Part shown: in pieces, positions 3,731-57,836 of the stretch
How positions within the stretch are numbered: the first letter of the stretch is position 1
How the letters are laid out: each line of letters begins with the position of its first letter
From: Guillardia theta CCMP2712
Lineage: Eukaryota; Protista; Cryptophyta
NCBI RefSeq assembly: GCF_000315625.1
Contig: NW_005434650.1
Span: 162,158 to 226,157, forward strand
Length of the DNA stretch: 64,000 nt
Direction of reading: 5' to 3'
The notes under the pieces: generated by a model
What the model was told of the DNA's origin: nothing
Database searches by the model: none
Seen by the model: the letters and a program-made list of their open reading frames with translations, nothing else
Position numbers and translations under genes: made by a program

Positions 3731-3771
3731 GACTCGAATTTGTTTATGTTGGGCGCTATGAGCTCAATCCT

Positions 3772-3809
3772 TTTGTAGTAATGCAGTCGAGTCACTGCAT
3801 TACTACAAA
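3772..3809. repeat. Perfect 16-bp inverted repeat with 6-nt loop
   Basis: TTTGTAGTAATGCAGT-CGAGTC-ACTGCATTACTACAAA. Confidence 0.9.
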
Positions 3810-3975
3810 CAAATTCAGTGACGTCCGGTCATCGGACAAAAACAGTCGGTCGCCAGCCCGGCCGGGCTCTTGTCGCATCATCGCCCTCAAACACCTTCAG
3901 CAGGTCCGTCCGGCCAGCCGTCCGGCAACATCCTGTACTGGGCAAGGACGGCAACGCGCGTCTGGTGAACTAGAG

Positions 3976-5942
3976 ATGGCGGGGAGGCTGCGGAGGATAT
4001 GGCAGGAGGCGATGGAGGAGGAGCTGCAGTACGAGGGGGAGGACGAGGAGTCTGTTAGAGTCGGCAAGTGGGTGAGGGATGTCTGCATGTAAGTTATAGT
4101 TGCGCAGCAATGCTCCGTCAGTGATCACCGTTCATTCACCAGGTTCTGCCTCTATCTCCTTGTCTGCACTCTCGCAGTGCTTTTGGGGAACGAGAAGAAC
4201 ATGGCAAGGAGTGTGAACAAGTTCTGGGTGAACTTCTTCTCGAACCGGAGCTCGACAGTCAGGTGAGCTTGCTCGAAAGCCATGGCTAGTTTCAAAGTTT
4301 GTTGTTCCTTACGAGGTCCTCAGAGACCTGGATGGGCTGCAGCTGTTCATGAACGAGGTGATTGCTGGCGAGCTGATGAAGACTTCATTCCTGTACAACC
4401 GCTACGGACAACAGAACAGCTCTTACGGAGTTCTTTTCGGCAATTCGTTGATTGGGAATGCAAGGTGATTTGTGGGCTGTGACAGCCATCAGGCTAACGG
4501 CGTTGCAGCTTGCGGCAGGTGAGGGTCAAGAGCGACGCGTGCGGCTCAGTCCATGGCGCCCTTGACAACGATGGCATCCTAGCTGGCACCGAGTGCTACC
4601 CGTCATGGACCTTGGGAACGGAAGACGCCGTCTACTCCAAGAGCAAGGCTCAGAAGCCCCTACAGCCCAAGAGCTTCCACGCCTTCACCTCCGCAGCTTC
4701 GACCGGCTCTCCCAGCTACGTCGGGAGCTTCGGCACGTACCCGGGAGGAGGCTTCGTCGCTTCGTTCGCTGTGCAAGACACGAGCAGGATATTGCAAGAA
4801 GTTGCAGGCGCCCAATGGGTGGACCCGAAGACTCGCGCGCTCTTCTTTGAGATGTTCATGTACAGCGCCAATGACGATCTGTTTCTTTTCTCTCAAGTCT
4901 GCTTCGAGTTCCCAGCTGGAGGCTTCGTTTTACCGTCTAGCACGGTGTACACCTACGATATCAACCGCTACAAGGCGAGCAGCATGAAGAGCAACCTCGA
5001 GTACTTCTTCTTCTTCTTATCCTTGTTGTACATCTTGAAGGAGTTCGCGGCCTTCCGTCGACAGAACATCTGGAGATATCTTCACTTCGACTGGCCAACC
5101 CTCGAGTTGACGCTGGTGCTGCTGGTTATCATCAGCGCCGGGCTGAGAGTGTACCACTCGTACATGCTCTCAAAGATTACTTCATCCTCGGCCATGACTG
5201 TTCTATCTGTGCAGCAGGCTGTAAGAGGAGCTGCAGTCGCGTCGGCAAATCTCGATGCTGCCTTCGGGGTCATCGCGTTTCTTCTCTGGACCAAAAGTCT
5301 GAGATACATCATGCTCACCAGGTCAACTCGTCGCTTAATGACAGCGATCTACTTCAACGTCCGCAAGATGCTGTCGTTCGCCATGATCGCTACTTTGCTC
5401 ATCTACGCCTGCTCACTCACTGCTTTCATGCTGTTCGGGGCCAACCTTGACCAGTTCCAGTCGATCAACAGAAGCGGCTCCACCATCATCCAGTCGATCT
5501 TCGGCAACAAGATCTTCGCTGTCCTGGTCCATGAGACCGGCAGCGGAGGTTTCCTCTACTACTTCGGAACCATCGCGGCGATCCGCGTCTTCGTCTACAG
5601 CATCCTTGTGGCCATCGGCATCGACAGCTACAGGAAGGCGGTGCAAGGCGAGCAGACGGCGAAGAAGCCTCTGCTAGAGCTGATCCGCGGGGAGCTTGCG
5701 CGGAGACATCGGGAGTACATGACGTGAGATTGTTCTTCGCTCTTAACTTCTCTGAGGGTGTTGGATGTAGGAGGGGATTCAAGGAGGAGGAGGAGGCGTC
5801 GGGCCTGGTGAGCCCCGTTTGTTCATTCATATGGACTGACAGCCTGGCAGAGGACGATCAACCGACGAGCTTCTTCGAACGCGCAGCGCAAGGAGTCAGG
5901 AGCTCCCCGCGAAGCAAGATGGAAACCCTGGGGGTTGGATGA
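3976..5942 (+). CDS. Polycystin-2 (PKD2/TRPP)-like cation channel, multi-exon
   Basis: Main exon 4510-5722 has LRQVRV, GTYPGGGF, WVDPKTRALFFEMFMYSAND and FEFPAGG (polycystin TOP domain), then ~6 TM segments with a LFGANLDQF pore region. Upstream exons are joined by short introns. Confidence 0.85.
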
Positions 5943-5949
5943 CAAGGAC

Positions 5950-8900
5950 GGCAGTAACGAGCATCTGTGATGGGCCCTTCACTTCGCCCAGCCGATCGCC
6001 TGCAGCCAGTAGTTCTCCGCATCGCGGATGGAGCCGGCGACGAAACTTTCTTTCTGCTTGCTGATCCTTGAGGTCAGTGCGAGCGGTTGACTGAGGCAGC
6101 AACAACCTGAGGATCGCCGACTTCTCTTCCTCTCTTGGCAGCGGATCTGCGACACGCGTCAGTCTTGTTGTGCTCGTGACGAGCATGGCAACCCGGGTTG
6201 ATGCTCCTGCTGCTGCTGCTGTCGGCCGGCTCCGGCGGTCTCCCTTGCTCGGGCATCTTGTCGCCAGGATAGTCTCTGAACCACGTCTCTGGAGAAATCT
6301 GAGCAGCTGTCAGCTGTGCGGCCCGATGCTGCCTCTCACCTGCGCTCGGAGGTTGGAAGCCAGTCGGTTACTGTGATCGAGACGGTCTTGGAGGACAGCA
6401 ACCTGCGGCAGAGGTCAGCTCGACCCTCATCGCACTGCCTTCACGTGGCATCTGTGCTTCTCCTTCTCTGCCAGCAGCTCGTGTGCGAGGCTGCGGCTTG
6501 TGTCTTCCAGCTGGAAACATCTCTTCTCCGTGCCTGAGGCCAGGGTGACATTCTGGGAGGGGAGGGAGGACTCACTTGTCAGGTTCTCCTTGGCGGCGGT
6601 CAAGGCCTTCTGAAGGGCGGAGATGCGGGCTCGAAGCGCTCTGATCAAGACAGCGTTGCCCTCCCACTTGCTCTCCTCCACGTCCATGGCGAGAGGCTGT
6701 TGATCTCTGGGGAACAGGTCAGTGAGGAGAAGCGCTGCGAGGAAAGGATACCTCGGGTCCTTGTCGTGCCCATCCTCGCTGTGTGGTGCGGAGTCATTGA
6801 AGGGAAGGAAAGCTCGAGGGCTCCAGGGCTGCGGGGGGGGGAAGTCTTCAACAGGCTGCCGGATGAGTCTATTGCTCCTCCTCTGCTGGGGCACTCTCGG
6901 CCCCTCCTGCGCCTCCGAACTCAAGGCCTCCAGGGTCTCAGGGACCTGCGGGTTGATGGAGCCCGAGACAATCTCTGCAGGCACAAGGTGAGAACGAGCT
7001 GAGGTCCGGCCTCCTCCTTCACAGCACCTGCGAGTGAGCTCTGGAGCTTGATGCGCATCCCTTCCATATCGTGAGACTCAATTTCTTCCTGCCTCTGGTT
7101 CGTCAACTCCTCCACTTCCTCCTCTTCCTTCTCCTCCTCCTCGGCAAACTTGACGCACCTTGAGGGTCTTTCTGGCCTGATGCTGCGACTTCTCCCACGT
7201 CTCTTTCTCAGCCATCAGCTCCTGCAGCTTTGCCTGCCAGAGATTCAGACCAGAGGAAAGCAGAGGAGGAGCTGCAGGGAGAGAAGGAGGAGGGGAAGGA
7301 GGAGGAGCTGCACGAAAGGATGGAGGACCTCGGTCGAGGACGAGCGGCTGGTGACGGCTGCGAGCTCCTCCTCGAGTTTCTCCTTGTCAACTTTCTGCCA
7401 GCGATTTCAACTCGTTGCGAGATGACAAGCCACTCACGAGCTGGCGGTACAGCTGGGAAAACTCCTCGACGTCGCTCGTTAGCTTCTCGTTGGCCTTGAC
7501 CAACTCGTCCAGCTCTGCCGCTTGACTGTGAGGAGAAGGAGCAGGGAAAGAGAAAGAGCGGGGGGAGGAGAGCGGGGGAGAAGGGAGGTACCGAACTCTC
7601 GTTGGAGGGCGAGCTCATGCAGGGTGAGCTCTTCCTTCCACTGCTGCACCATGCTCTCGTAGCTGCTGGTGACATGTTGGAGCTGAAGATGGCTATGAGA
7701 AGGAGCAATGAAAGGGACGCGAAAGAGAGGGAGGAAAGAAGGGAGAGGAGCAGGGTGAACCTGGTCACTTAAAAGAGCTTCAGCTCGTTTCAGGTCGGCG
7801 ACTTCTTTTCTCATCTCATGCTTCAGACCTCGAATGATCAACTTGCTGCTCGTCATCTTGGAGGGAAGTCATTTTGAAGGAAAGAGACGACAAGAAAATC
7901 ACGACAAGACAGCGTCAAGGCGACGACCTGAGAATCAAGAGTCGTCGTCGATTCTAGAACTTTCTCTTTCATCTCCGATAGCAGCACATCGAAATTCTCG
8001 ACGAATCTGTTGTCTTCCACCCGTTGATGTTCGATGAAGTTGAGACAGAAGGAGAGCCTGTCTTCAAACTCTTGTATCTTCCTCGCTATATCCTCTTCGT
8101 CCATGGGCTGGCCCCTCGGTGCTACCTCTCCTCCTCCTCTCCTCTTCTCTCCCTCCCCACCCAGCAGTTGGACTGACGTATCTTCCTCACTTGAAATGTC
8201 TTCACGCTTCGGGTTTGCGTCCATTTCCGACGAGGGAGAGGAGGAGTATCGAGCAGAGAAGCACAGGCTGGTGCTCTTTCCATTGCCTCCCGTAACTACC
8301 GTCCCGTCCAAGTCGCGCACGACGTGCCAAGTCTGCGCGGGGGTGAGCCGAGCAGGGGCAGGCCGAGGTGACCTGGTCGAGCTGAGCCCCAGGAGCGAGA
8401 CTGATGAGCACTTGACCTACGCAGCCGAACTCGCTGTTGATGACGGAGAGGAGGAGAGTGACCTGAGAGTCAAGGTGAGAGAGGAGTAGGGAGGGGAACT
8501 TGGGGAGGTAGGAGAGAGAGCCAGGAAAAGAGAAGGAGGATAGAGAAGATAACGGGTTATGAGGAGGAAGGAAAAGGTGGATAAGGAAGGGGAGAACAGG
8601 GGAGGGGGCATGGCAGTACCTCTCTACCGTCAAGCGGGAAGGGTTTCTCAAACGGCTCATTGCAAACGTCGGTGACGGTCAGGGTCTCGTTGAATTCAAC
8701 GTGATCGAGAGATGACCGAACCTGCAAAGGGAAACGTAAGAAGATGACGGGAGAATGTAGAGGCTACCGAGAGACTATAGGGACATAAAGATATAGAGGC
8801 TATAGAGATATAGAGGCTATAGAGATATAGAGGCTATAGATAGAGGCTATAGATAGAGGCTATAGAGACTGTAGATACTACGTTCGTTTGATCAGTCAAT

Positions 8901-39138: not shown

Positions 39139-42100
39139 ATGGAGGGGAGCATGGAGGCGAGTGCGATCCAATGGATCAACACGTTCGAAGACAAGGAAGA
39201 GAACAAGGTGAGAGCTGCGAGAGAGAAGAGAGCAAGCCGCGAGAGACGAGACGAGGAGAGGAAGAAAAGGAGGAAGGAGGAAGAGGGGAGGAGAAAGGAA
39301 TGGGGAGGGAGGGGAGGTCCTGCAAGGAGGCAAGGGAAGCGAAGGGTGGATCTCACTGGTCTATCATGCGATAGATTTCCTCCCTAGACCAGCTTTCCGA
39401 TGGACTGATTCTGTGAGTTTTGCTCGATGTACAGGATTTCAACTCATGATGATTGACAGACATGAAGTCCTTCGAGACATTGCTCCCGAAAGCTTCTTGG
39501 AGGAGTCGCTCAAGTTGGATGTTGGTTCCAACGTCATCCTGAAGGTCCTGGGTCTGGCTGGCTTCGAAGCTGACGCTTAGTCTCTTGGAGTAGGCCAACA
39601 ACATCAAGCGACTGCTCAAGGAACTGGATGCTTACTACCGAGAAACTTTTCGACAAGAGATGGACGTGAACAGCATAGATGCTAATGCTGTGGCTCGAGG
39701 AGAAGCTGAAGCGGTGCTGTGAACCTGTCAATTCAAATGGTTGATTTAAGGGTGCAGATCATGAAATTGGTTGAACTTGTGTTGGGTTGTGCTGTGCAGT
39801 GTGAGAAGAGACAAAGGTATGATAATATGAATTTAGTCTATCATGACAACGAAATCAGATACATCGAGCGATTGATGAACGATCTCGATAAATCGTCTCA
39901 AGCAAACATCATGATTCTTACTCAGGTCCCTCTACCTCTACCTCTACCTCTACCTCTACCTCTCCCTCTCCCTCTACCTCTACCTCTACCTCTACCTCTA
40001 CAACTACCTGTACCAATACCGGGAAGTCTACCCGTTCCTATGTTTGACGATACCAAGGAGGTGCTTTGACAACCTTGTGGTACTTGGTGGGTCTTTGACA
40101 TCCTGCAAAGACGATGAAGGAGTTCGTTGGAAAGGCATCCTCCAAAGAAGACAATAATGACGAGGTAATGGATCATAGGCCATGCTATATCCATCCCCTT
40201 TCTTTCTCGTCTCGTCTCGTCTCCTCTCCTCTAATCTGCTCTGCCCTCTCCACTCCCCCTCTCTCCTCTCCTCTCTTCTCCTCTCCTCTCCCCTCCTCCT
40301 CTTCTATTTCTCGCTCATTTCTCTTTCAGCCCGTGGAGAGCACAGACCAGAATCGCTTCCGTCGTCTCGCGCATGGCGCTGGGGTACTAGTGCAGGATCT
40401 CGTCCTTCCGCCTCTCATCCTTCCCTCCAGTACGTCCATGGAGGTATCGTGGTTGGCACTGCCGAAAACTCCGGCCCCGACAGGTCTGCTGAGCATGTTT
40501 CCCCTCCCTGACTGTGCATGTCTGCTCTTCTTTCCTCTCCCTCCTTCTCCTGCCAACTGTGCTCATGCTTGTTAACAGATACGGGCANNNNNNNNNNNNN
40601 NNNNNNNNNNNNNNNNNNNNNNNNNNNNNNNNNNNNNNNNNNNNNNNNNNNNNNNNNNNNNNNNNNNNNNNNNNNNNNNNNNNNNNNNNNNNNNNNNNNN
40701 NNNNNNNNNNNNNNNNNNNNNNNNNNNNNNNNNNNNNNNNNNNNNNNNNNNNNNNNNNNNNNNNNNNNNNNNNNNNNNNNNNNNNNNNNNNNNNNNNNNN
40801 NNNNNNCCCCGCCCCCCCCTTTCCATCTAACCCCCGCCCCTCCCCTCCCTCTCTCTCCCCCCCCTCCCTGAATGCACTCCCTCCCTCCCTCCCTCCCTCC
40901 CTCCTTCCCTCCCTCCCTCCCTCCCTCCCTCCCTCCCTCCCTCCCTCCCTTCCCTGCTCACTATCGACAAGGTCAAGTATGCAAACCTGGAGTTGGAGCA
41001 TCAGGATGCCCTCATGCAGCTCCGGTCAGCTCGATCCGAGCTGGAGCGCGTCAAGGTTGGCATTCGCATTCGGTAAGGCAGGGGATGAGGAATGGAACAG
41101 GCGGAGAGAGACATGGCGCTAAATGCCGACGACGCGGAGGAAGGAGTGACTGCGTCTAGTCTAGGAGGTAGAAGAGCGCGAGTGAAGCAACGGGCTGACA
41201 ATGGACAGGAGGAGACGCGGAGATGAGACGAGCGATCGCAAGGCTCTCCATGTGACATCATGCATTCCATCCATGCACGCCTCACAACCTTCAGGGAGAA
41301 TCGGCAGCTGCGAGTTGGGATGATGGCAGGGGATCTGAGCGGGGGGGGGGAGGCAGCCAAGGTGTCTGACTGAAAGTTGGTGCTGGGATGACGTTGACGA
41401 TGCAGAGAGAAGCTGAGGTGAAGGTCTGCAGAGAGACCATCCAGCGACTTGAACAGGACAAGGCAACTTTACAGGATGAGGTAGCGACTCTAAAGGCGCA
41501 TGCCGGAGTGAAGGTGAGAAAGGAGGAGAAGACAAGGCTGACAGCAGAACCTGATGCTTTTCAGGCCGACATGAGGGATCAGCTCGAGCTGGAGGTGCAG
41601 AGGTAATTCGAGGGCATGTGTGCTTGAGAGTCACGCCTGGTCAGACTGAGATCGGAGCATTTGGAGTCGCTTGCGAGCAACGAGAAGATGGGGGAGGAGA
41701 TAGCAAGGTGAGAAAACTGATTTCCTCCTTCCCCCTCCCTCCCTCCCTGCCTCCCTCCCTCCCTCCCTCCCTCCCTCCCTCCCTCCCTCCCTCCCTCCCT
41801 CCCTCCCTCCTCCTCCCTCCCTCCCTCCCTCCCTCCCTCCCTCCCTCCCTCCCTCCCTTCCCCCTCTCCCCCCTCCTTCCTTCCATGACTTGTCTTGTGC
41901 TGCAGACACGTGGAAGAAAAGAACGCGCTAGTCAGCAGCAAGAAGAACCTGTCGGATGAGAACATGACGTTAGCGAGGAAGGCAAGACAAGTCTCTCGCT
42001 CGTCTCTCCTCAGCCTCGTGTAGATCTTCGAAGCCGAGAAGTTGACGTGGGAAGCTGAGCAGCGAGCGCGAGCCATAGAAGACAAGGTGATCGAGACCTG

Positions 42101-45460: not shown

Positions 45461-47574
45461 TCTCTCACTAACGCACGCAAACTCACCGATGCCCTCCTGC
45501 AGCTTCTTCGTGTGCTGGTAGGAGCTGTCTTGCTTGCTTCAGAAAGCATCTACGTGGTTGTAATGAACCATCTCCTCCTTGAATTCACCGCGTCTCTCCT
45601 CCAGCAATCGTCACACGAAGCCTCGACCATCCATCCTATACCGTTAATTCAACGATATAGCAGCGCATCGAGTGAGGGCGGCAGTGAAGTCGGGACCGCC
45701 AGAGCTCACCAGAGTCTGAAGAGAATTGGTGAGCTGAGGAGATGACTAGGGACCCTTGATCTTGTGTTAGGAATTTACAATCCTGTTGATCTAACTTGAC
45801 TCTGAGAACTTGAACCATCTTGCTAACATGTTTTATGCAAGCAAACTTCTCTGTAGAGATCTGCTCCTTCCACTCACAAAGACCCTCTTCCATGGCAGCT
45901 CTGGCTCTTGAATTCCGTGTCCCCTCGCTTGCCGCGGACGGTTCCTACTGGCTTCTGCTTGAGGCACTTTCTGCCTTATGCCTTGAATGGGGCGAGTAAA
46001 ACTCTATGGTTACATCCGATGATCGTTCTTATCGCCGTAGACGGTCACCCGGGGCAGCAAGAAGGCGAGCTCGGAGCAGCCGCGAACATCCCAGTGGCGT
46101 GAGAGTCGTGCGATGGACGGAAACTGGGCAAACTCTACTGCGGTGCTTGCTGCTGGTCCGAGCTCGCCTGCTTCCTCCCGGCATCGGTCGGGTCACGCCG
46201 GTCCTTGGGCATTGCCGCGGCGTCGCCGCCGTCACGGGCGGTGTTGGTCTCGGCAGGAGGTTTAGCTTGTTCCTGCTTTGTTTTGCTTGAGGCACTTTTT
46301 ACCTTCTGCCAGTAAATCCGTAGTTTGTGTTCCTGTGTCCAGCCTGCCCCAGGCGGACCCCCGGGCAACGCCGGCTCCTTGTCGGCGGCTGCCCTTTCTC
46401 CGTCCGCGACCGCCAGCTTTGTGGCGGCAGCCGCGGACGTCTCGACTGACAGTGGTCAGTCGGCTGCCTCCGGGTATCGCGTCTAAGTCGTCTAAGGGAT
46501 TTTATTCCTCCTGCTTGCTCCTGCTGCTTGTTGCTTGATTGCTTGACACTTCGGCTGCTTGTCTGCGCGGCTTCGCGCTTGGGCTGGCGATGCCGGGTCT
46601 GCTGACAGTTGCCAGCAGTGCTGGTTCTTTTCGGGCTTGTGTTTTGTGTGTGATTGTGCAGCTTCTCGCTGTTCGCTGTATGCCTGGAGGTTTAGCTTGA
46701 TCCTGCTTTGTTTTGCTTGAGGCACTTTTTACCTTCTGCCAGTAAATCCTATATGACTCCGAGGCTCTCTCTACCTGGGCTGCTGTGTGCTATGCGAGCA
46801 AAACTCAGATCCCGTTGCCAGCAGTGCTAGCCGCGCCTGTTGAGTCTTGCTGCCTTGCGTGTCAGGATACGGATTTACTGGCAGATCATGTAAAAAGTGC
46901 CTCAAGCTGCGAGAGTGACCGCGGTCAGTCGACGCCGTTCCGCCGCCGCAGAGGCCGCGGACGGAGAAAGGGCCCGGGGGTCCGCCTGGGGCAGCGGACA
47001 CATGGAGGCTGGGCGCATGCTCCCTTGGAGAGGATTTACTGGCAGAAGGGAAAAAGTGCCTCAAGCAAAACAAAGCAGGAACACACAGCACACAGCGAGA
47101 AGCTGCACAATCACACACAAAACACAAGCCCGAAAAGAACCAGCACTGCTGGCACCCAGACCCTGCACCGCCAGCCCCAGCAAGCGCGAAGCCGCGCAGA
47201 CAAGCAGCCTAAGGGTCAGGCAATCAAGCAACAAGCAGCAGGAGCATGCAGGAGGAAGAAAATCCCTTACACGCGATACCCGGAGGCAGCCGACTGACCA
47301 CTGTCAGTCGAGACGCCCGCTGCCGCCACAAAGCGGGCGGGCCGCGGACGGAGAAAGGGCCGCTGAGCCGCCGACAAGGAGCCGCCCGTGACGGCGGCGA
47401 CGCCGCAGCAATGCCCAAGGACCGGCGTGACCCGACCGATGCCGGGGAGGAAGCAGGCGAGCTCGGACCAGCAGCAAGCACCCCAGTGGTGTCGAGCTCT
47501 CCGGAGGCACCCGACGTCACAGTGAGGGACGGAGACGCTTGGCCAGCTCCGCGCCGATCGTCGGCGCCACCGTG

Positions 47575-47840
47575 CTGGATGTTTATGCCGTTGCAGCTAC
47601 GTCCGCTATGAAGAAGTACATGTTGGCTGATCTGAAGCTAGAGATTCAACCTCGCGAGTCGAAAGTTTACATCCCCTCTTGGCATCAACACCCTGATCTC
47701 TCGCAGCTGAAGAAGAGCCTTAAGCGCCGTCTCAAGACTCAACTTCTTCACTTCGAGGTCGTCACTGGCGGGATTACACTTGGCAGCCTGCCTATCGGCA
47801 CGGATGGATCCCTCAACGAAGAGCTCTCGAAGCTCGGCGG
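47575..47840 (+). pseudogene. Reverse transcriptase fragment (domains 6-7 region)
   Basis: DLKLEIQPRESKVYIP...GGITLGSLPIGTD resembles the GL.LN..KS.VY...G+..LG.PIG pattern of CRE-clade RTs. Confidence 0.65.
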
Positions 47841-48763
47841 CTCGATGCCTCTTGAGGATGCGGCGTTTGGTCGGCACTTCGTGCCTGATGACGGACCTGC
47901 TGCTGAGGTCCTGGCTCGCAAACGCGCCGCCACCTATCAGCGCCTCACTATGCAGCTGACGCTGGAGGCGCTCTTGTCTGGTGCGAGGCGCATGACGCCC
48001 TTGCGGGCGCAAGCACTTCTCGAGCCAGAGGACAGCTCCTCCTCGGACTTTGTCGAGTCGCCCGAGGGGGAGTCTTCGCCGGAGGTCTCCGACTCCGATG
48101 GGGGAAACCCTTCGAGTGGCCCCGACGATCGGCGCGGAGCTGGCGAGGCGTCTCCGTCCCTCACTGTGAACCACTGGGGTGCTTGCTGCTGGTCCGAGCT
48201 CGCCTGCTTCCTCCCCGGCATCGGTCGGGTCACGCCGGTCCTTGGGCATTGCCGCGGCGTCGCCGCCGTCACGGGCGGCTACCGCTGACTCGGCTACCGC
48301 TGACTCGGAGGTTAGCGAGGAGGACTACCTCGAGCGGTACCGTGTTCATGTGTCCAGCCTCCCTCCGTCCGCTGCCCCAGGCGGACCCCCGGGCAACGCC
48401 GGCTCCTTGTCGGCGGCTGCCCTTTCTCCGTCCGCGGCCGCCCGCTTTGTGGCGGCAGCGGACGTCTCGACTGACAGTGGTCAGTCGGCTGCCTCCGGGT
48501 ATGGCGTCTAAGGGATTTTATTCCTCTTGCATGCTCCTGCTGCTTGTTGCTTGATTGCTTGACCCTTAGGCTGCTTGTCTGCGCGGCTTCGCGCTTGGGC
48601 TGGCGATGCCGCGTCTGGGTGCCAGCAGTGCTGGTTCTTTTCGGGCTTGTGTTTTGTGTGTGTTTGTGCAGCTTCTCGCTGTGGACTGTGTGCCTGCCGG
48701 TTCAGCTTGATCCTGCTTTGTTTTGCTTGAGGCACTTTTTACCTTCTGCCAGTAAATCCTATA
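47841..48763 (+). mobile_element. Longest contiguous 5'-truncated copy: ORF C-terminus (stop at 48511) + ~250-bp 3' UTR + TATA tail
   Basis: SMPLEDAAFG...YQRLTMQL...SGQSAASGYGV*, then a T/G-rich UTR ending CAGTAAATCC-TATA. A small internal deletion at ~48169 is seen relative to the minus copy at 47490-47520. Confidence 0.8.
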
Positions 48764-50128
48764 CCTGCCAGAAGCTGCGCTTCTTCCTCCAGGGGTCTTC
48801 TCCGTTTCTCCCGCGGGTCCAATCACAGATTCGTCGCTTTGACCTCTCTGTCCACCTGGCGCTTGAGAAATACCACCGCTGGCCTTCCTCGCAGTACCTC
48901 GCCGCGCATCCCGACCTGCTCGAGTTTGCGAGGTTCAAGCGGGAGCTTCCGCATAGTCGGGGAGGGGACGAGTTCACGCCCTCTGAGGGTAAACACCCCG
49001 CTGTTTACTGAGTATATAGGATTTACTGGCAGAAGGTAAAAAGTGCCTCAAGCAAAACAAAGCAGGATCAAGCTGAACCGGCAGGTACACAGTCCACAGC
49101 GAGAAGCTGCACAAACACACACAAAACACAAGCCCGAAAAGAACCAGCACTGCTGGCACCCAGACGCGGCATCGCCAGCCCAAGCGCGAAGCCGCGCAGA
49201 CAAGCAGCCTAAGGGTCAAGCAATCAAGCAACAAGCAGCAGGAGCATGCAGGAGGAATAAAATCCTTTAGACGCGATACCCGGAGGCAGCCGACTGACCA
49301 CCAATGTGTGGTTCTGTACGGTACGTACTATACGGCTATCGCTCGCTTCCTCGCTTGGTACTCTGACCAGCCGATGTCCCGGACGCTGCCCTCTCCTCAT
49401 AGCCTGGACGTTCACAGCTCGAGATCTCTCCGTGCCCAGAAGCATCCTCTGGCGACCTTCTTCGTTGAGGCGCACGACTTCGTTCATAATGCTGGAGCGT
49501 ACATTGGCAGCTCTGCCGACCTGACCAAGTGGGGGGAGGTCAACCTCGACGCCCTCCATGTTGCAGCGTCTGAGAAGGTATAGGATTCGCAAACATCGCG
49601 CTGCATATGCCATGACTACTCCTCCTCGAGCGTTCATCCCTCTTGCCATCTCGACGGACGGTACCCTGCATCCTGACACCCTCCGCTTCATCTGGTATCT
49701 CGCGGACATCATTGCTCAGCGCTCGATGCCTCTTGAGGATGCGGCGTTTGGTCGGCACTTCGTGCCTGATGACGGCCCTGCTGCTGAGGTCCTGGCTCGC
49801 AAACGCGCCGCCACCTATCAGCGCCTCACTATGGTTCTTTTCGGGCTTGTGTTTTGTGTGTGCTTGTGCAGCTTCTCGCTGTGGACTGTGTGCCTGCCGG
49901 TTCCGCTTGTGTCCTGCTTTGTTTTGCTTGAGGCACTTTTTACCTTCTGCCAGTAAATCCTATAAAGGCTATGCAGCTGACGCTGGAGGCGCTCTTGTCT
50001 GGTGCGAGGCGCATGACGCCCTTGCGGGCGCAAGCACTTCTCGAGCCAGAGGACAGCTCCTCCTCGGACTTTGTCGAGTCGCCCGAGGGGGAGTCTTCGC
50101 CGGAGGTCTCCGACTCCGATGGGGGAAA
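48764..50128 (+). pseudogene. RT thumb and RLE endonuclease remnants of an older host copy, interrupted by younger copies
   Basis: CQKLRFFLQG...RRFD...ELPHSRGG (thumb LP..GG motif). Also HDF..IGSS...ALHVAASEK/IRKHRAAY...FIPLAISTDGTLHPDTLRFIWYLAD (RLE C-terminal K..K[HY]...F.P....T.G.LH pattern). Confidence 0.75.
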
Positions 50129-52976
50129 ACGTAAACACGGATTTACTGGCAAATGGATTGACTGGCAGAAGGGAAAAAGTGCCTCAAGCAAAACTGGCAA
50201 AGCAGGATCAAGCTAAACCTCCTGGCACACAGCGCACAGCGAGAAGCTGCACAATCACACACAAAACACAAGCCCGAAAAGAACCAGCACTGCTGGCACC
50301 CAGACCCGGCACCGCCAGCCCCAGCAAGCGCGAAGCCGCGCAGACAAGCAGCCTAAGGGTCAAGCAATCAAGCAACAAGCAGCAGGAGCATGCAGGAGGA
50401 ATAAAATCCCTTACACGCGATACCCGGAGGCAGCCGACTGACCACTGTCAGTCGAGACGTCCGCTGCCGCCACAAAGCGGGCGGGCCGCGGACGGAGAAA
50501 GGGCAGCCGCCGACAAGGAGCCGGCGTTGCCCGGGGGTCCGCCTCAGGGGGCAGCGGACGGAGGGAGGCTGGACACTGGCAGAAGGTAAAAAGTGCCTCA
50601 AGCAAAACAAAGCAGGATCAAGCTAAAACTCCTGGCACACAGCGCACAGCGAGGAGCTGCACAATCACACACAAAACACAAGCCCGAAAAGAACCAGCAC
50701 TGCTGGCAACCAGACCCGGCAGCGCCAGCCCAAGCGCGAAGCCGCGCAGACAAGCAGTAGTAGTGGATTTACTGGCAGAAGGTAAAAAGCGCCTCAAGCA
50801 GACAAGCAGCCTAAGGGTCAGGCAATCAAGCAACAAGCAGCAGGAGCATGCAGGAGGAAGAAAATCCCTTACACGCGATACCCGGAGGCAGCCGACTGAC
50901 CACTGTCAGTCGAGACGTCCGCTGCCGCCACAAAGCGGGCGGCCGCGGACGAAGAAAGGGGGGTATAGGATTTACTGGCAGAAGGTAAAAAGTGCCTCAA
51001 GCAAAACAAAGCAGGATCAAGCTAAACCTCCTGGCACACAGCGCACAAGCAAACATTGCACGTGCCTGTCCCATCCTAGCATCTCTGTTTTGCTTGAGGC
51101 ACTTTTTACCTTCTGCCAGTAAATCCTATGCCTCACGCGGGCTCCGGGTGATCCGCCCCCCAATTCACCCACGTGATCGCTTCACTGATGACGGCGGAGA
51201 CTTTTCCTTGCTCTGTTTCCAGCCTGTGGCGTTCCGCCTCGCATCATCACCCAAGTCCACCAGTCGCATAGGATTTACCACCAAGCTTCCGCCCGGTGAG
51301 CAATGGCGACCGCCAACTTGAAGTCGGCGCAGGATCGGCATTGGTAAAGATGGGCCCTCGGCCTCGCCCGCACAGTCCAGACACACTCCCCCCACTCGGG
51401 CTACAGCCAGGCGCGACCCTGGCCGGGAGGGAAAAAGTGCCTCGACCGGACCCCCGTGCAACGTCACGGGCGGCTCCCGCTGACTCGGCTACCGCTGACT
51501 CGGAGGCTAGCGAGGAGGACTACCTCGAGCGGTACCGTGTTCCGATGGAGATAGGATTTACTGGCAGAAGGTAAAAAGTGCCTCAAGCAAAACAAAGCAG
51601 GAACAAGCTGAACCTCCTGGCACACAGTCCACAGCGAGAAGCTGCACAATCACACACAAAACACAAGCCCGAAAAGAACCAGCACTGCTGGCACCCAGAC
51701 GCGGCATCGCCAGCTGTTCCTGTGTCCAGCCTCCCTCCGTCCGCTGCCCCAGGCGGACCCCCGGGCAACGCCGGCTCCTTGTCGGCGGCTGCCCTTTCTC
51801 CGTCCGCGGCCGCCCGCTTTGTGGCGGCAGCGGACGTCTCGACTGACAGTGGTCAGTCGGCTGCCTCCGGGTATCGAGAAGCTGCACAAAACACACACAA
51901 AACATAAGCCGGCGTTGCCCGGGGGCGGCCGCGGACGGAGAAAGCTGCCCTTTCTCCGTCCGCGGCCGGCGGACGGAGAACGGCCGGCGGACGGCCACAA
52001 AGCTGGCGGCCGCGGACGGGCAGCCGCCGGCCGCCGACAAGGAGCCGGCGTTGCCCGGGGGTCCGCCTGGGGCAGCGGACGGAGGGAGGCTGGACACAGG
52101 AACACGGTACCGCGGCTCGAGGTAGTCCTCCTCGCTAACCTCCAAGGGACCTGGGCTGTCACGGTGCGGCATCGGAGGCAGGCGAGCTCGGACCAGCAGC
52201 ATTGGTCAGTCGGATGCCTCTGGGTATCGCGTCTAAGGGACGGTACTAGTGACTCTGCATCCTTCCTGGCCATTATCCTGACACCCTCCGCTTCATCTGG
52301 TATGATTTACTGGCAGAAGGTAAAAAGTGCCTCAAGCAAAACAAAGCAGGAACAAGCTGAACCGGCTTGCTCGAGGTTTCAGGTTGAGGCGTTTTTTACC
52401 TTGCCAGTGCGCGGCGAGTAAAACTGTGCCTGGAGCCTCATGCGCCTCGCACCAGACAGGAATGCCTCCAGCGAGCTGCATAGTAAGGCGCTGGTAGGTG
52501 GCCGCCGCCGAGACCGAAAGTGCGCTGTGTGCCAGGAGGTTTAGCTTGTTCCTGCTTTGTTTTGCTTGAGGCACTTTTTACCTTCTGCCAGTAAATCCGC
52601 AACATGAAAGTAACCAGGCTGCGCTCCATGTAACCGAAACTTGAAGTAATCTGCGGCTCAGTAACCATGAAGACTGCTATCTTCATGGCACCCGTCGGGG
52701 GGGGGGAGGGTATACTGCTGTGCGAGACTACGGCTCTTTTACTCGTAGGATGCCAGTGCCGGGCTGCGACTGACCGTCGGACGGTGCAGTGCCACCGGGT
52801 CGCCGGGCCGGGGCCGGGGGATCAACCGTTACGTTCAGTTATAGCACTGAGATCCTGCCGTAGTGAAATACAGATGCGAAAACTTTGAAATCTTCGAAAA
52901 GGGGCGGGGCCGGCCGCCTGGGCCCCATTACTTCTCCCGAAATTTCAAATATTTCTCTAAGAATTTCAAATGTTGA

Positions 52977-55900
52977 TTGACGATCAAGGATACCCGTAGT
53001 CACCTGGAGGTCACCGTTAATTCGCCATGGAGGGCGAGGAGGAGGGAGGAGAGGAGGAGGGAAGGAAGGACGAGCGACTCGCTGCTACTCGTTGACCTCC
53101 TGGACACGATGAAACGCGAAGACCCTGAAAGCGACCTGACGAACATCCTGCAGAGCTCCCTGCTGACGTATCAGTCTCCTCCTTCCTCTCCAAGAGAGAA
53201 GGAAGGGGACTTCGCCGGAAAGATCAGACAGGTGGCTTCTCGCTTCCTGGATTTCACAGGGTTGCCGCTTATGTTTGCACATGAAGTGGAACATGCTGGA
53301 AGGAATGCAAACAAATCCGTAGAGGTCGCAACCCCTCCTTTGCATCTTGAAAGCTCGGAACAGAGACACAAAGAGCGACAAACCTCTGAGGCAGAGATCA
53401 AGTTGAGGAACAGCTTGTTGCTATGCATCGTCAGGTTGTACTTCCGAAGATGGGAAGAGTTCTGTGAAAATGGGGGCGACGACGTGGAGGCTTCAGGGCA
53501 GCAACAGGGGAAGAGAAGCATGTATGCCAAGGCGAGGAGGATCCAAGACGCTCGTCCTGCTGCGCTTCAAGAAGAAGTGCTGGAGGGATGTAAGTCGATC
53601 AAGACCTTGCACCAGGAGCTCGCAACGTGCAGGCATGCAGCTGAAGACCTCGCGCATGATGATAGCGCGGATGCTGCATCTAGATCGCCCTTGAGTGCGT
53701 GCGAGCGTGAACCCGATCAGTTTTCTCCTCCAAGTTTGAAAGTTCACGAGGACATGGAAAGGCAGGATGTCAGTGCAGGGACGGCAGTGCCTCTGATCGA
53801 TTACGCTTGTCTCCTGGCTCCCAACAGAGAGAAACTCGCGCTCAGAGCTCCTGGTGCGTCTGCGTCGCCGTTGCTGGATGCCGGAGACAACAGCATAGAG
53901 AGCCCTCCTTGCATGATCGACTATGCTTCGCTCATCTCCTGCAAGTTTGAGACCTCCGTGCCTTCCTCTTCCTTGCTACCAGCGAGCCCGGGGGATCTAG
54001 AGGATGAGAATGATGCAGAGCTTCCTTCCATCGACTACCATTCGCTGATCCACAGCAAGATGCAGAACCTTCAAGACCTGGATGACATGGAGAGACATGG
54101 CATGGAAGACATGGAGAGACATGGCATGGAAGACATGGAGAGACATGGCATGGAAGACATGGAGAGACATGGCATGGAAGACATGGAGAGACATGGCATG
54201 GAAGACATGGAGAGACATGGCATGGAAGACATGGAGAGACATGGCATGGAAGACATGGAGAGACATGGCATGGAAGACATGGAGAGACATGGCATGGAAG
54301 ACATGGAGAGACATGGCATGGAGGGCATGGCGAGACATGGCATGGAGGGCATGGCGAGACATGGCATGGAAGACATGGCGAGACATGGCATGGAAGACAT
54401 GGAGAGACATGGCATGGAAGACATGGAGAGACATGGCATGGAGGACATGGAGAGACATGGCATGGAGGGCATGGCGAGACATGGCATGGAAGACATGGAG
54501 AGACATGGCATGGAAGACATGGCGAGACATGGCATGGAAGACATGGAGAGACATGGCATGGAGGGCATGGCGAGACATGGCATGGAAGACATGGAGAGAC
54601 ATGGCATGGCAGCCAACCCCCCTAATGACATGTTTCACTATGATGCAATTGATCTTGAATTGATTGGCGCTCGAGACATGGTTTCGTCTCATCACATCGC
54701 TTATGCGGATGGCGACGAATCCTTGGAGTGCGGGGTCAGTCTGACCGAGATGCAGAGGAGCGTGACGTTGCTGAACAGAAGGGCTTTGTGCTCGTCTTTC
54801 TGTGCATGGGTTGAATCTCAGAAGAGAGATAAGGCCCTCAGCAAGATGGTTAGTGACGGCAGGTGCAAGCTTGACAGAGACAACCAGAGGCTTTCTTTCT
54901 TGTGCCTAAAACGCGAACACGATCGACGAAAGGATCTCGAGGCGACTGTTTCTACTCTCACTTCAGAACGAGCTAGGTCGTTGGCAACAGGCTGCCTGCA
55001 GGCTTGGAGCATGTTGTCTATCGTGACTCGATGTGTAGCTCATCTCCGGCAAGACAAAGACTTGCAGCTCTTGCAGCTCGCGGTCGACTTGTGGTGGCGG
55101 GTGACCAAGAGGGCGTCAAGAAACGCTCAGCGGGTGAATGAGCGCCAGGAGAAGTTTCTGCTGCATGTCTTCCTTCAATGGAATTCAGCCGCTTTGCGTA
55201 TCGCCAGCCTGCAGCGTCGCCTGAGACTCGCGACCAACAGAAGACTTCGCGCGAGCTGTCGCAAGTCGTTGGAGTGTTTCAGCAGGAACTCTTTCCTTGA
55301 GCAGAGGAAGGGCAAGTGCTTGGAGGTCGCCCGGCTTCAGTCTCTTTCTCGGTTCTTGTCGGCATGGTCGCTGGTGCATCAGCTCTCTCTCGAGTGTCTG
55401 GTAATGCAAGTCAAGGCGGCGACGACGCAGCACCAGCAAGACGCTGAGGTTCTCCAGCTTCTCAGAAGATGCCACGGAGATGTTGAAGTCGCCATCCGCC
55501 GCAAACAAGCTGAAGACGTTGAGAGGATCAGCAAGGCCGTTGGAGTGAGCGAAGCCATGGCAGCAAGCTTGCTGCAGCACGCGATGGGAGATGCCGGAGA
55601 AGCGATCTTGATCGCTCACGAGGCCGAGAAGACCGAGTTGGCTTGTTCTCACTTCGCCAAGCGGAGCAAATTCAAAGTGATACACGCGCTTAAAATGGTG
55701 CGAGAGAGAGAATGCGATTTGTCCTTGAAGCAAGCTGCGCTCCAAGACCAACACACCTTCTACCAGATGTTCACGGCCATGAGCTGCTGGCGGAAACTTC
55801 GAAGCGTCAACCTTCACTCATTGAAGAATGAGCTTGAACTCAATGAGCAATCCCTGTTCATTGATATGGCTGTACATTTCTGGGAATGGAGAATGCAGTG

Positions 55901-57836
55901 CAAGTGGAAGCTGAGAATGAAGAGTTGGATGCTAGAGCTTGAAGAGAGCCGATACTTCAAATCCCTGTCTCAACATCTTTCTCGCTGGACGCACTACAAG
56001 CAGCACAAGAGATGGTTGAAGGATGCGGTTGACATCTCAGTCAGAACTAGAGACTCTGCCTTGCTGCGGACATGGCTTGTGCATAGGTGGAAGCGGCATG
56101 TTGACGTGAAGCTCTACCAAAGCGTCGCTTTCCCAACGATTGAGAGGAGGATAGCGGACAATCAGAGTAGAGGCTTGAAGGCTGCAGCCATTGCTGCCTG
56201 GAGTTGGCTCGTGTGCTGGAGGAAGACGCGAGAGTTCTGCTCGCAAGTGACGGAAGAGATGAAGATGTTTGCTTCGCTGTTTCTGACCAAGTGCGAGGGA
56301 GACGTGAAGAAGGCGGTAGCTTACGCCAACAAGGTCGATGAGGAGAAGAAGATGAGCAGTCTCAGTGAGAGAGCTGGTGGCAACCTCGCCTCTGACCTGT
56401 GCTTGGAAGCCGTGCAAGCCAGTCATGGTGACGTCGATCAGGCAGCTCAGTTTGTGTGGTTGCAGGAAGCCTGGCAGCGAGCAAGAGTGTTGGCGGCGTT
56501 GACAACAAGCAGCAGGGCGCTTGATCTGTGGAGAGACTTGTGCTATCAGCAGCGAGCCTCCCGTGTCTTCGTGTGGCATCGCAAGCTCAGCATGGAGCGC
56601 CGATGTCTTGCGGGTTGGCGGGAGAGGTGGAGGGTCAAGGCTGGGAGGAGCCAGCAGCTGAGGAGGTTGGTCTGGCGGCGGGAGGTGAGTAGCTGCTGGC
56701 GCGGCTGGATGGCGACGGTGCGATGCCGGCAGGGCGAGCTGAGAGTGTACGAGCTGGCGATGGACATGTGGAGCCGAAAAGTCTCGCCCGGCATGCTAGT
56801 GAGGGCACCTGACGCCCCCAGTCAGGTGGCTGCTCGGGTCTGCCAGCTCCGTGTGCTGCTTCGCGTGTCGCGTCTCGTTCGCCGGTGGAGTGACCTTGCC
56901 AAGTCGGTAGGATGGGAGAAGAAGCGTGCTCGAGGCGTGCTGTCGGTGCTGCTCACCATGAAGCTCTCGGCCGCCCTGTCCAAGTGGATCTCGACTGTGC
57001 GCAGGCGTCAGCTTGCCGTTCATAACGGCATCGCCGTCGCCACCATGCGCGTACGTCGTCTCGCCGCCAGTCACTTGAGAGCTTGGGCTCGCCTCTCGTC
57101 CGTCGCTTGTCTTAGAGCCAAGCAGCAGCATGCCGTCTCTCTGCGAGCTCTGTCGGCCTTGGCTGATCGCGCTCGCGTCCGAAGAGCGTTGCGCGAGCAC
57201 GCAAGCTCAGTAGCTGCGAGCCATCGCAGACGTGTGCTTGCTCGCTGCTTGATGGGATGGGATGAGGAGAAGGTGAGGCTGATGCTGCAGAAGCAGCAGC
57301 GCAAGGCGGCAGATCTTCTCGGTACTGAGTTGAGTGACTCGCGCGGGTTAGAGCTGCTGCGATCGACGCTGGACGCATGGCGAGACACGCTTGAGGAGCA
57401 GCGAGAGACAGTGTTGGAGCTCGTGCGGGCGAGCAGGAGGAGGCGGGTCAAGTCGGCGCTAGAAGGATTCAAGGCCTGCCTGTTCTTGGAGAGAAGAGGA
57501 TTCAACTTGACGCTCTTCGTGGTGACATGGAGAGCTGAGGCTGAGAGGAGGAAGCGAATCCGGATGAGGATAGAGGAGATGGGGCGATGTCAGAGGCTGG
57601 CTCTGTTGGAAACCTTCACTAGCGAATGGCTCCGTGTCTCCGCTGCTCTCCGTATCCTCATGGCAAGCAGCAAGCGAAGCAGGCTTCTCGTGTGCTTCGG
57701 AGGGTTGAAGGAAAGGACGAGATGGCGGAGAAAGCTCAAGGGAGACGCGCACACGCGAGCAGTTGAGCTTGGAGAAGAAGCCTTTGCGCAATGGAAGAAG
57801 CAACGAGACGAAGAGAAGAGGGAGGATGAAGAATAG
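52977..57836 (+). CDS. Large Sfi1-repeat-like protein with UBA-like modules and an 8-aa tandem repeat (first ATG 53109; a short 3' exon near 57923 is possible)
   Basis: 1619-codon uninterrupted ORF. Periodic R/K-rich helices with recurring Trp (FCAW, LQAW, FLQW, LSAW, LSRW, LAGW, LSKW, LRAW, LDAW, FAQW). Confidence 0.7.
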   Translation: MTIKDTRSHLEVTVNSPWRARRREERRREGRTSDSLLLVDLLDTMKREDPESDLTNILQSSLLTYQSPPSSPREKEGDFAGKIRQVASRFLDFTGLPLMFAHEVEHAGRNANKSVEVATPPLHLESSEQRHKERQTSEAEIKLRNSLLLCIVRLYFRRWEEFCENGGDDVEASGQQQGKRSMYAKARRIQDARPAALQEEVLEGCKSIKTLHQELATCRHAAEDLAHDDSADAASRSPLSACEREPDQFSPPSLKVHEDMERQDVSAGTAVPLIDYACLLAPNREKLALRAPGASASPLLDAGDNSIESPPCMIDYASLISCKFETSVPSSSLLPASPGDLEDENDAELPSIDYHSLIHSKMQNLQDLDDMERHGMEDMERHGMEDMERHGMEDMERHGMEDMERHGMEDMERHGMEDMERHGMEDMERHGMEDMERHGMEDMERHGMEGMARHGMEGMARHGMEDMARHGMEDMERHGMEDMERHGMEDMERHGMEGMARHGMEDMERHGMEDMARHGMEDMERHGMEGMARHGMEDMERHGMAANPPNDMFHYDAIDLELIGARDMVSSHHIAYADGDESLECGVSLTEMQRSVTLLNRRALCSSFCAWVESQKRDKALSKMVSDGRCKLDRDNQRLSFLCLKREHDRRKDLEATVSTLTSERARSLATGCLQAWSMLSIVTRCVAHLRQDKDLQLLQLAVDLWWRVTKRASRNAQRVNERQEKFLLHVFLQWNSAALRIASLQRRLRLATNRRLRASCRKSLECFSRNSFLEQRKGKCLEVARLQSLSRFLSAWSLVHQLSLECLVMQVKAATTQHQQDAEVLQLLRRCHGDVEVAIRRKQAEDVERISKAVGVSEAMAASLLQHAMGDAGEAILIAHEAEKTELACSHFAKRSKFKVIHALKMVRERECDLSLKQAALQDQHTFYQMFTAMSCWRKLRSVNLHSLKNELELNEQSLFIDMAVHFWEWRMQCKWKLRMKSWMLELEESRYFKSLSQHLSRWTHYKQHKRWLKDAVDISVRTRDSALLRTWLVHRWKRHVDVKLYQSVAFPTIERRIADNQSRGLKAAAIAAWSWLVCWRKTREFCSQVTEEMKMFASLFLTKCEGDVKKAVAYANKVDEEKKMSSLSERAGGNLASDLCLEAVQASHGDVDQAAQFVWLQEAWQRARVLAALTTSSRALDLWRDLCYQQRASRVFVWHRKLSMERRCLAGWRERWRVKAGRSQQLRRLVWRREVSSCWRGWMATVRCRQGELRVYELAMDMWSRKVSPGMLVRAPDAPSQVAARVCQLRVLLRVSRLVRRWSDLAKSVGWEKKRARGVLSVLLTMKLSAALSKWISTVRRRQLAVHNGIAVATMRVRRLAASHLRAWARLSSVACLRAKQQHAVSLRALSALADRARVRRALREHASSVAASHRRRVLARCLMGWDEEKVRLMLQKQQRKAADLLGTELSDSRGLELLRSTLDAWRDTLEEQRETVLELVRASRRRRVKSALEGFKACLFLERRGFNLTLFVVTWRAEAERRKRIRMRIEEMGRCQRLALLETFTSEWLRVSAALRILMASSKRSRLLVCFGGLKERTRWRRKLKGDAHTRAVELGEEAFAQWKKQRDEEKREDEE
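54083..54610 (+). repeat. 24-bp coding minisatellite, ~22 copies, encoding (GMEDMERH)n
   Basis: Unit GGCATGGAAGACATGGAGAGACAT with GAC/GGC and GAG/GCG variants. Confidence 0.97.

Follow-up and report, generated by a model that had tools for sequence, protein, structure and literature searches.

A 6,550-bp stretch of the nuclear genome of the cryptophyte alga Guillardia theta CCMP2712 is built from copies of one RLE (restriction-like endonuclease)-type non-LTR retrotransposon inserted into each other, and because one such island occurs on nearly every chromosome-sized scaffold (26 of the 28 largest), these islands are the best candidates for the undescribed centromeres of this alga. The stretch lies at positions 46049-52598 of the window, by which we mean the whole 64,000-nt stretch analysed here (assembly GCF_000315625.1, contig NW_005434650.1, positions 162,158 to 226,157 of the forward strand). 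The centromere reading is well supported but circumstantial, as it is inferred from the sequence and distribution of the element alone.

The pattern reported in a preliminary description of this sequence proved to be real when examined in detail. The 31-nt terminus of the element occurs 13 times when up to three mismatches are allowed, six times on the + strand and seven on the - strand, always between 46289 and 52598, whereas shuffled sequences give none. A blastn comparison with a natural near-full-length copy (L035, on contig C77 of the assembly; positions 2656-7593 of that locus, hereafter the reference) finds element sequence only at 46049-52598, in 31 segments totalling 5.7 kb of 6.55 kb, or about 87%, and nothing in the other 57 kb. 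The island contains no N, the only gap in the window being at 40588-40806, and its GC content is 60.1% as compared to 53.0% elsewhere. The parts that are not this element are a retro-copy of SRP RNA (51062-51427) and a 117-bp piece (46754-46870). In one respect the preliminary description needs correction: it had counted about 14 near-complete copies, but the 3'-complete fragments are 36-960 bp of a ~4.9-kb element and are therefore strongly 5'-truncated. As no consensus of the element was built, all coordinates refer to natural copies. The features of the island and its borders are as follows.

46049-52598, both strands: the island, 31 fragments of one RLE-type non-LTR retrotransposon, nested and in both orientations, filling the whole intergenic space.
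45961-46009, + strand: degenerate 3' terminus of an older sequence variant of the element at the left edge of the island, with a ~13-nt insertion relative to the main terminus and a similar AGTAAA..CTAT motif at its end (read directly from the sequence).
46137-46753, + strand: older 3'-complete copy (reference 4344-4937, 83% identity) carrying a nested 61-nt copy at 46259-46319.
47031-47384, - strand: 3'-complete copy of 354 bp, 89% identical to the reference copy.
47585-50128, + strand: old backbone copy (reference 2251-4252: late reverse transcriptase, thumb/linker and C-terminal coding region) in five collinear pieces (47585-47844, 48768-49009, 49326-49499, 49500-49833 and 49971-50128), with an internal loss of reference 3000-3771 that includes the CCHC knuckle and part of the RLE; split by three younger insertions.
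47832-48763, + strand: nested insertion A, the longest 3'-complete copy in the window (932 bp, reference 3979-4937), with about 46 bp of backbone lost at the site.
49015-49301, - strand: nested insertion B, 287 bp, in the opposite orientation, with a ~4-bp target duplication; 99% identical to the tail of insertion A.
49832-49965, + strand: nested insertion C, 134 bp, in the same orientation, with target duplication CTATG.
50155-50960, - strand: two 3'-complete copies head to tail (50155-50576 and 50575-50960), the second carrying a nested 36-nt copy at 50765-50800.
50964-51427, - strand: chimeric retro-copy, a full-length SRP (7SL) RNA (51427 down to about 51062) fused at its 3' U-tract to the last ~84 nt of the element (51047 down to 50964).
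51083-51129, + strand: 47-nt copy of the 3' end of the element (terminus at 51096-51126), inserted later into the 3' part of the SRP retro-copy.
51264-51284, - strand: 21-nt micro-insertion in the SRP retro-copy, consisting of the last 8 nt of the element plus TAT, a few extra bases and a 5-bp duplication (TGGTG).
51551-51714, - strand: 164-bp copy nested in a + copy (51462-51542 and 51715-51876), with target duplication TGTTCC.
52301-52366, - strand: 66-nt 3'-complete copy.
52386-52428, + strand: second degenerate terminus of the older variant, near the right edge (read directly from the sequence).
52525-52598, + strand: rightmost 3'-complete copy (74 nt), the right border of the island.
52977-57836, + strand: flanking open reading frame (1619 aa, containing a DMERHGME repeat) 380 bp to the right of the island, not part of the element.

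The region 47539-48288 might be taken for an internal-deletion derivative of the element, but the alignment shows it to be a backbone copy plus a nested insertion.

The preliminary description had proposed an RLE non-LTR element, and this is confirmed. The element encodes one long protein, consisting of an N-terminal region of unknown fold, a poly-Q tract, a reverse transcriptase, a CCHC knuckle and a PD-(D/E)xK restriction-like endonuclease of the R2 type, although no intact full-length reading frame was found in the loci sampled. Pfam gave only weak RVT_1 matches just below the cut-off, and a phmmer search of PDB with a single copy found nothing; however, a profile built from 18 relatives hits R2 reverse transcriptases in PDB at an E-value of 5e-17 and LINE-1 ORF2p at 2e-6, and the motifs RPIVIG, DAKNAF, QGD and YADN are readable. 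In the same profile search the CCHC and D...D...K residues align with the RLE of R2Tg, and D97, D117 and K149 are invariant in 13 relatives. An AlphaFold model of the C-terminal domain (AF2; pLDDT 83, pTM 0.81) has R2 proteins as its top seven Foldseek hits (probability 1.00, E 8e-6 to 7e-3), followed by other PD-(D/E)xK nucleases, so that by profile and by predicted fold the best PDB matches are R2Tg, R2Pm and R2Bm. Identity to the nearest non-Guillardia relatives is only 23-31%, and the remote relatives are all metagenomic. In the N-terminal part, Pfam found nothing in the first 205-215 residues or in residues 1-700 of the sister family, and a feature search gave only weak, unnamed hits; no zinc-finger, Myb or chromatin-reading domain was detected in these searches.

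The structure of the copies carries the signature of target-primed reverse transcription (TPRT), with a common 3' end, variable 5' truncation and short target duplications. The element has no poly(A) and ends at a fixed GTAAATCC-TAT(A). The lack of poly(A), the precise 3' end, the 5' truncation and the short target duplications are shared with R2 and other RLE-bearing non-LTR retrotransposons (R4, CRE/SLACS, NeSL, Utopia). Genome-wide there are about 700 3' ends but only six full-length 5' ends, such that about 99% of copies are 5'-truncated, and 160 3'-complete segments have a median length of 131 bp. That the nest is self-accreting, as had been suggested, is also confirmed: nested insertions with target duplications were resolved in the window and in 30 other loci. 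Among 31 resolved insertions, the duplications are 3-8 bp in 24 events with a mode of 6 bp, 18 are in the same and 13 in the opposite orientation, and the targets are spread over reference positions 1266-4901 with no base preference at any of 24 positions. This is in contrast to R2, CRE, NeSL and Utopia in the strict sense, which cut one defined DNA sequence in a multicopy gene; a search with Rfam found no rRNA, snRNA or spliced-leader gene in the island, only the SRP retro-copy, and there are no tRNA genes. TATA as a target site could also be excluded, as TAT(A) follows about 70% of 120 termini but the bases beyond it are diverse, so that it belongs to the end of the element.

What is new in this island is the chimeric retro-copy of SRP RNA and the element. 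It matches Rfam RF00017 over model positions 1-299 with 118 bits, starts within 1-2 nt of the start of the SRP genes on contig C44, runs to the U-tract, and then continues into the last ~84 nt of the element. Like the U6-L1 type of chimeric retro-pseudogene, in which the template is switched during LINE reverse transcription, it joins a full-length small Pol III RNA through its 3' end to the 3' end of a LINE in the same orientation, although the partner here is SRP RNA, the LINE is of the RLE type, and the flanking duplications could not be resolved because of later insertions. Alignment to a C44 SRP gene shows that the SRP sequence was subsequently hit by two more micro-insertions, one of 47 nt and one of 21 nt. 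The possibility that the SRP RNA gene is the specific target of the element is ruled out, since the true SRP genes form a tandem array on C44 and the island copy is a chimeric retro-copy. Rather, insertion into SRP sequence argues that integration is directed to the place, not to the element's own sequence. The earlier suggestion that the element homes to its own copies or their chromatin is therefore supported, and narrowed towards place rather than sequence.

The number of clusters per chromosome had been named beforehand as a test of the centromere reading, and the outcome is in its favour. A genome-wide search gave 699 termini against none for a control pattern. All exact hits on contigs C1-C24 fall in one cluster per contig, apart from one solo copy on C21, a 260-bp fragment 56 kb from the island there; C16 has none. 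On C1-C11, 97 of 97 exact 17-mer hits lie in 11 clusters occupying about 97 kb of about 13.7 Mb, and an independent 20-mer internal to the 3'UTR gives the same clusters on 26 of the 28 largest contigs, C16 and C27 showing no island with the exact markers. Reverse-transcriptase matches, 80 in number on about 55 contigs, always lie within about 20 kb or less per contig. In a telomere search that could be resolved no further than C12, arrays in the correct orientation were found at both ends of C2, C5 and C8 (the subtelomere junction of C2 is unique), and each of these has one internal island, at 0.56, 0.57 and 0.66 of its length, a small sample (n = 3) but without exception.

We consider it reasonably likely that the stretch is one of about 70-80 islands, each built by repeated TPRT of the single ~4.9-kb element into the island itself, and that it is a centromere. 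The architecture of the element, its fixed 3' end, the pervasive truncation, the nesting without a target motif and the landing of an SRP chimera that was itself hit twice are directly demonstrated by the sequences; that integration is directed to the locus by chromatin or by a tethering factor rather than by a DNA word, and that the locus is the centromere, with CENH3 and kinetochore assembly at the site, are inferences, the latter from the presence of one internal island per chromosome-sized scaffold. The preliminary interpretation as a whole is supported at that level. It remains possible, if less likely, that the islands are self-targeted 'safe havens' or heterochromatin knobs, one per chromosome for historical reasons, and that the kinetochore assembles somewhere else. 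Every observation here shows insertion preference and distribution rather than kinetochore function, RLE elements, R2 and CRE among them, are known for homing to particular loci such as rDNA or spliced-leader genes without any centromere role, and a gypsy-type family is also enriched in the islands, as expected for any heterochromatic sink. However, a self-seeding sink has no reason to be exactly one per chromosome and internal on 26 of 28 scaffolds and on three of three complete ones, in green algae the same pattern coincides with CENH3, and no other once-per-chromosome feature was seen, albeit in an analysis that did not scan the genome for one.

It seems unlikely that there is no targeting and that selection in a gene-dense genome has removed randomly inserted copies everywhere except in a tolerant, low-recombination region. 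The genome is indeed compact, the island fills a whole intergenic space and one solo fragment exists outside an island, yet related RLE families (36-45% identical) and LTR elements persist dispersed along the same scaffolds, the RLE families far from the islands, so insertions elsewhere are tolerated. Furthermore, the confinement of 97 of 97 termini to 0.7% of the sequence, including very young copies 99% identical to each other, is too extreme for selective filtering alone, and a 310-bp SRP retro-copy inside the island received two further hits. It is more doubtful still that the mosaic is an assembly artefact of collapsed or mis-joined repeat reads placed once per scaffold. This is a Sanger-era draft in which many islands contain N gaps, which leaves their sizes apparent only, and many small contigs consist only of island sequence. 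Nevertheless, the island described here has no gap and joins unique flanks on both sides, at 45.0-45.9 kb and 52.6-53.0 kb of the window, nested copies are bounded by precise target duplications on collinear backbones, which mis-assembly does not create, and an independent metagenome contig shows the same nested architecture.

The closest parallel is with the Zepp and ZeppL LINE clusters of green algae (Coccomyxa subellipsoidea, Chlamydomonas reinhardtii, Chlorella), to which the preliminary description had already pointed. In Coccomyxa, nested Zepp clusters occur strictly one per chromosome and are GC-rich (61% against 53%; PMC3446292), and in Chlamydomonas CENH3 maps to ZeppL clusters (bioRxiv 10.1101/2025.03.28.645958); nested, 5'-truncated copies of one LINE family in clusters of a few kb to tens of kb are common to these and the islands here. 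The comparison is an analogy, however, as Zepp and ZeppL are reported as L1-type LINEs whereas this element has a C-terminal RLE, no poly(A) and a fixed 3' end and lives in Cryptista, a different eukaryotic supergroup, so the likeness is convergent: it works like Zepp but is not a member of that lineage. The islands are also smaller than the 63-175 kb CENH3 domains of Chlamydomonas. The DIRS-1 clusters at Dictyostelium centromeres and the centromere-specific retroelements of plants, fungi and oomycetes similarly consist of one retroelement family that inserts preferentially into its own clusters, one per chromosome and taken as the centromere, but DIRS-1 uses a tyrosine recombinase and plant CR elements an integrase with a chromodomain, while the machinery here is TPRT by an RLE LINE.

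It is an intriguing possibility, which we regard as evenly balanced, that an RLE-class LINE, a class otherwise known for cutting one fixed DNA sequence, has switched to integration directed by centromeric chromatin and, by nesting into itself, builds the 5-30 kb regional centromeres of some 70-80 chromosomes of about 1 Mb. We found no paper describing these islands or the nuclear centromeres of any cryptophyte, and these would be the first centromeres identified in Cryptista and an independent origin of the Zepp-type centromere, the green-algal design in which one LINE family builds the centromere having arisen a second time with a mechanistically different LINE. If so, centromere identity in a whole eukaryotic supergroup would become testable with one CENH3 experiment, and G. 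theta would carry about 70-80 chromosomes of about 1.2 Mb. An RLE element that has given up a sequence target for a chromatin or place target would be of interest to those engineering R2-type enzymes for site-directed insertion, and at 5-30 kb the islands are small enough to try as parts for artificial chromosomes in this model alga. The predicted RNA structure of the element's 3'UTR is not significant (z = -0.44).

The window corresponds to positions 162158-226157 of C24, an 809,438-bp contig in the 87.1-Mb, 669-contig assembly (G000), and proteins encoded by copies of the element are listed by NCBI as hypothetical proteins of Guillardia theta CCMP2712. In what follows, coordinates without a contig or locus name are those of the window. 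The 31-nt 3' terminus noted in the preliminary description occurs 13 times when up to three mismatches are allowed, six times on the + strand and seven on the - strand, with all occurrences lying between 46289 and 52598, whereas 100 shuffles gave none. Repeat finding revealed families of direct and inverted copies that all end at this terminus. When a natural near-full-length copy (L035:2656-7593, a locus on contig C77) was used as a ruler, the window was found to contain element sequence only at 46049-52598, as 31 segments totalling 5.7 kb of 6.55 kb. The island is free of gaps, the only assembly gap in the window being 219 N at 40588-40806, 5 kb to its left, and it is 60.1% GC compared to 53.0% for the rest of the window. 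The observation of a nest built from one element is thus confirmed, although the copies are short 3' fragments of 36-960 bp and not near-complete elements.

The longest natural copies indicate an element of about 4.9 kb whose 5' end begins CTGTTTCAGC, a sequence shared by L035 and a second locus, L037, and found only six times in the genome. One long reading frame encodes, in order, an N-terminal region of about 200 aa with no recognisable domain, a variable poly-Q tract, a reverse transcriptase, a linker, a CCHC knuckle, and a nuclease region with invariant D...D...K residues. A ~250-nt 3'UTR ends in GTAAATCC followed by TAT(A), with no poly(A); among 120 termini, TAT follows in about 70%, and the bases beyond it are diverse. 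The one near-full-length insertion examined (L035) has a 28-nt inverted copy of the element's own 3' end at its 5' junction (L035:2656-2683) and a short snap-back, an inverted 11 nt, after its 3' end (L035:7589-7618), which suggests hairpin or template-jump events during second-strand synthesis.

Pfam detects only a weak RVT_1 match in the encoded protein, but an exhaustive HMMER search identified distant relatives, 23-31% identical and all from metagenomes, that cover the reverse transcriptase through the nuclease. A profile of these relatives hits the R2 proteins of zebra finch, turtle and silkworm best (E 5e-17 to 3e-8), with both the reverse transcriptase and the CCHC-nuclease region aligned, whereas LINE-1 ORF2p matches only in the reverse transcriptase, at about 2e-6. 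An AlphaFold model of the C-terminal 271 residues (pLDDT 83, pTM 0.81) has R2 proteins as its top seven Foldseek matches in PDB (probability 1.00), followed by other PD-(D/E)xK nucleases. The element is therefore an RLE-type non-LTR retrotransposon.

The nesting can be resolved in detail within the window, where an old copy and the younger 3'-complete copies that split it, together with a fourth clean case, are arranged as follows:
47585-50128, + strand, old copy (reference 2251-4252) in five collinear pieces, with an internal loss of reference 3000-3771
47832-48763, + strand, younger 3'-complete copy splitting the old copy
49015-49301, - strand, younger 3'-complete copy splitting the old copy
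49832-49965, + strand, younger 3'-complete copy splitting the old copy, with target duplication CTATG
51551-51714, - strand, copy inside a + copy, with target duplication TGTTCC

Over the window and 30 other island loci, we resolved 36 insertions with collinear flanks on both sides, of which the 31 that have a positive target duplication of at most 16 bp were analysed. Twenty-four of these have duplications of 3-8 bp, with a mode of 6; 18 are in the same orientation as their host copy and 13 are opposite; the targets are scattered over reference positions 1266-4901, and none of 24 positions around the nick shows a base preference. Among 160 3'-complete segments, the median length is 131 bp. 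This is the signature of target-primed reverse transcription with very poor processivity and no sequence-specific target.

A feature of the island that is new here is a chimeric copy containing SRP RNA. Rfam identifies a full-length SRP RNA at 51118-51427 on the - strand (118 bits against a threshold of 70), yet the genuine SRP (7SL) RNA genes of this genome form a tandem array of at least 10 near-identical genes, spaced about 0.4-1.8 kb apart, at C44:559000-568600 (L040), close to the end of that 572,710-bp contig. Aligned to one of these, the island copy starts within 1-2 nt of the start of the gene, runs to the terminator U-tract, and then continues directly into the last ~84 nt of the element in the same orientation. 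This is the layout expected when the reverse transcriptase starts on element RNA and switches template to another RNA, and the island copy is a retro-copy of the C44 genes. The SRP part subsequently received two further insertions:
51083-51129, a 47-nt copy of the element
51264-51284, a 21-nt micro-insertion with a 5-bp duplication

Non-self DNA inside the island is therefore hit as often as the element's own sequence, which argues for targeting by place or chromatin and not by recognition of the element's DNA.

Across the genome, the terminus occurs 699 times with up to two mismatches, while the reversed control pattern occurs 0 times. All exact hits on C1-C24 fall in one tight cluster per contig, with the exceptions of a solo copy on C21 and the absence of any hit on C16. 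A 17-nt core gives 697 hits, and the 97 of these on C1-C11 lie in 11 clusters spanning 97 kb of about 13.7 Mb. An independent 20-mer located about 280 nt inside the 3' end gives the same clusters on C1-C28, except C16 and C27, and the reverse-transcriptase protein gives 80 matches on about 55 contigs, always within one stretch of about 20 kb or less. The C21 outlier (C21:590171-590427; L041:2171-2427 in the locus examined) is a solo 260-bp fragment in two pieces, 56 kb from the island of that contig, and is the only off-island copy seen on the 28 largest contigs.

The telomere repeat is TTTAGGG, and arrays in the correct orientation lie at both ends of C2, C5 and C8, giving chromosomes of 1.29, 1.23 and 1.18 Mb that each carry one internal island, at 0.56, 0.57 and 0.66 of its length. 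In some cases, sequence has been scaffolded beyond true chromosome ends, as telomere arrays lie 10-12 kb inside the scaffold ends at C2:1291598 (in a contig of 1,303,204 bp) and C4:10753. At about 8.8 exact 17-mer termini per island, 697 termini suggest roughly 80 island-equivalents, an inferred figure that would match about 75 chromosomes of about 1.2 Mb.

Other elements in the same genome provide internal controls. Two further RLE-type LINE families, 36-45% identical to the island element and with open frames of up to 1,406 aa, are dispersed along chromosome arms (C19:796730-800500, C22:193553-197260, C31:85972-89679, C4:598680-602105 and others), and some of their copies look intact. One is a sister family (P0184 type) that is 36-38% identical; examples of the sister and third families at C19:797k, C22:193k, 306k and 571k, C4:599k and C5:506k all lie far from the islands of those scaffolds. 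Confinement is therefore a property of the island family, and not of RLE elements or of selection in general. One Ty3/gypsy family (RT plus RNase H, copies 94-98% identical) has four of its nine close copies inside or within 5 kb of islands (C4:405136-406584, C53:481710-483011, C1:707316-708575 and C90:186112-187323), and so is enriched there but not exclusive, whereas more distant LTR families are dispersed. It is possible that this is a second island-preferring element.

It might be asked whether the mosaic could have arisen during assembly. Three points argue against an artefact: this island is gap-free between unique flanks, the nested copies have precise duplications on collinear backbones, and an independent metagenome contig (L047; ENA ERZ930071, run ERR2281808, PRJEB17505) shows a long copy followed by two tiny termini and then the continuing backbone. 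The copy on this contig has a 947-aa open frame that is 100% identical over the aligned part to a G. theta copy, such that G. theta or a very close relative is present in that sample. Other islands do contain gaps, so their sizes are minimum values.

The closest parallels are in green algae. Coccomyxa subellipsoidea has nested Zepp LINE clusters of 1.5-42 kb, strictly one per chromosome and GC-rich (61% against 53%), that have been proposed to be centromeres (PMC3446292). In Chlamydomonas, CENH3 CUT&Tag maps almost exclusively to ZeppL-LINE1 clusters (bioRxiv 10.1101/2025.03.28.645958), and CENH3 ChIP confirms TE-built centromeres in Chlorella (PMC11005252). If they are indeed centromeres, the G. 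theta islands work like these but are not members of that family, as the LINE here is RLE-type and the host belongs to another supergroup. Among RLE elements, this one lacks the defining feature of R2, CRE, NeSL and Utopia, which is a fixed DNA target. We found no paper on the nuclear centromeres of G. theta or of cryptophytes. The interpretation put forward in the preliminary description, that of a self-accreting RLE element marking a candidate centromere, is supported, but not to the same degree in all its parts: our analysis establishes the nest, the class of the element and the one-per-scaffold pattern, and place-directed integration is strongly suggested, whereas centromere function is inferred from sequence and distribution alone and is, on present evidence, the best reading and somewhat more likely than not.

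Both outer edges of the island (45961-46009 and 52386-52428) carry degenerate termini of an older sequence variant, with a ~13-nt insertion in the terminus, and the oldest copies may therefore sit at the periphery while growth may happen inside. Next to the island, a 1,619-aa open frame (52977-57836, + strand) contains about 30 tandem copies of an 8-residue DMERHGME/GMARHGME repeat.
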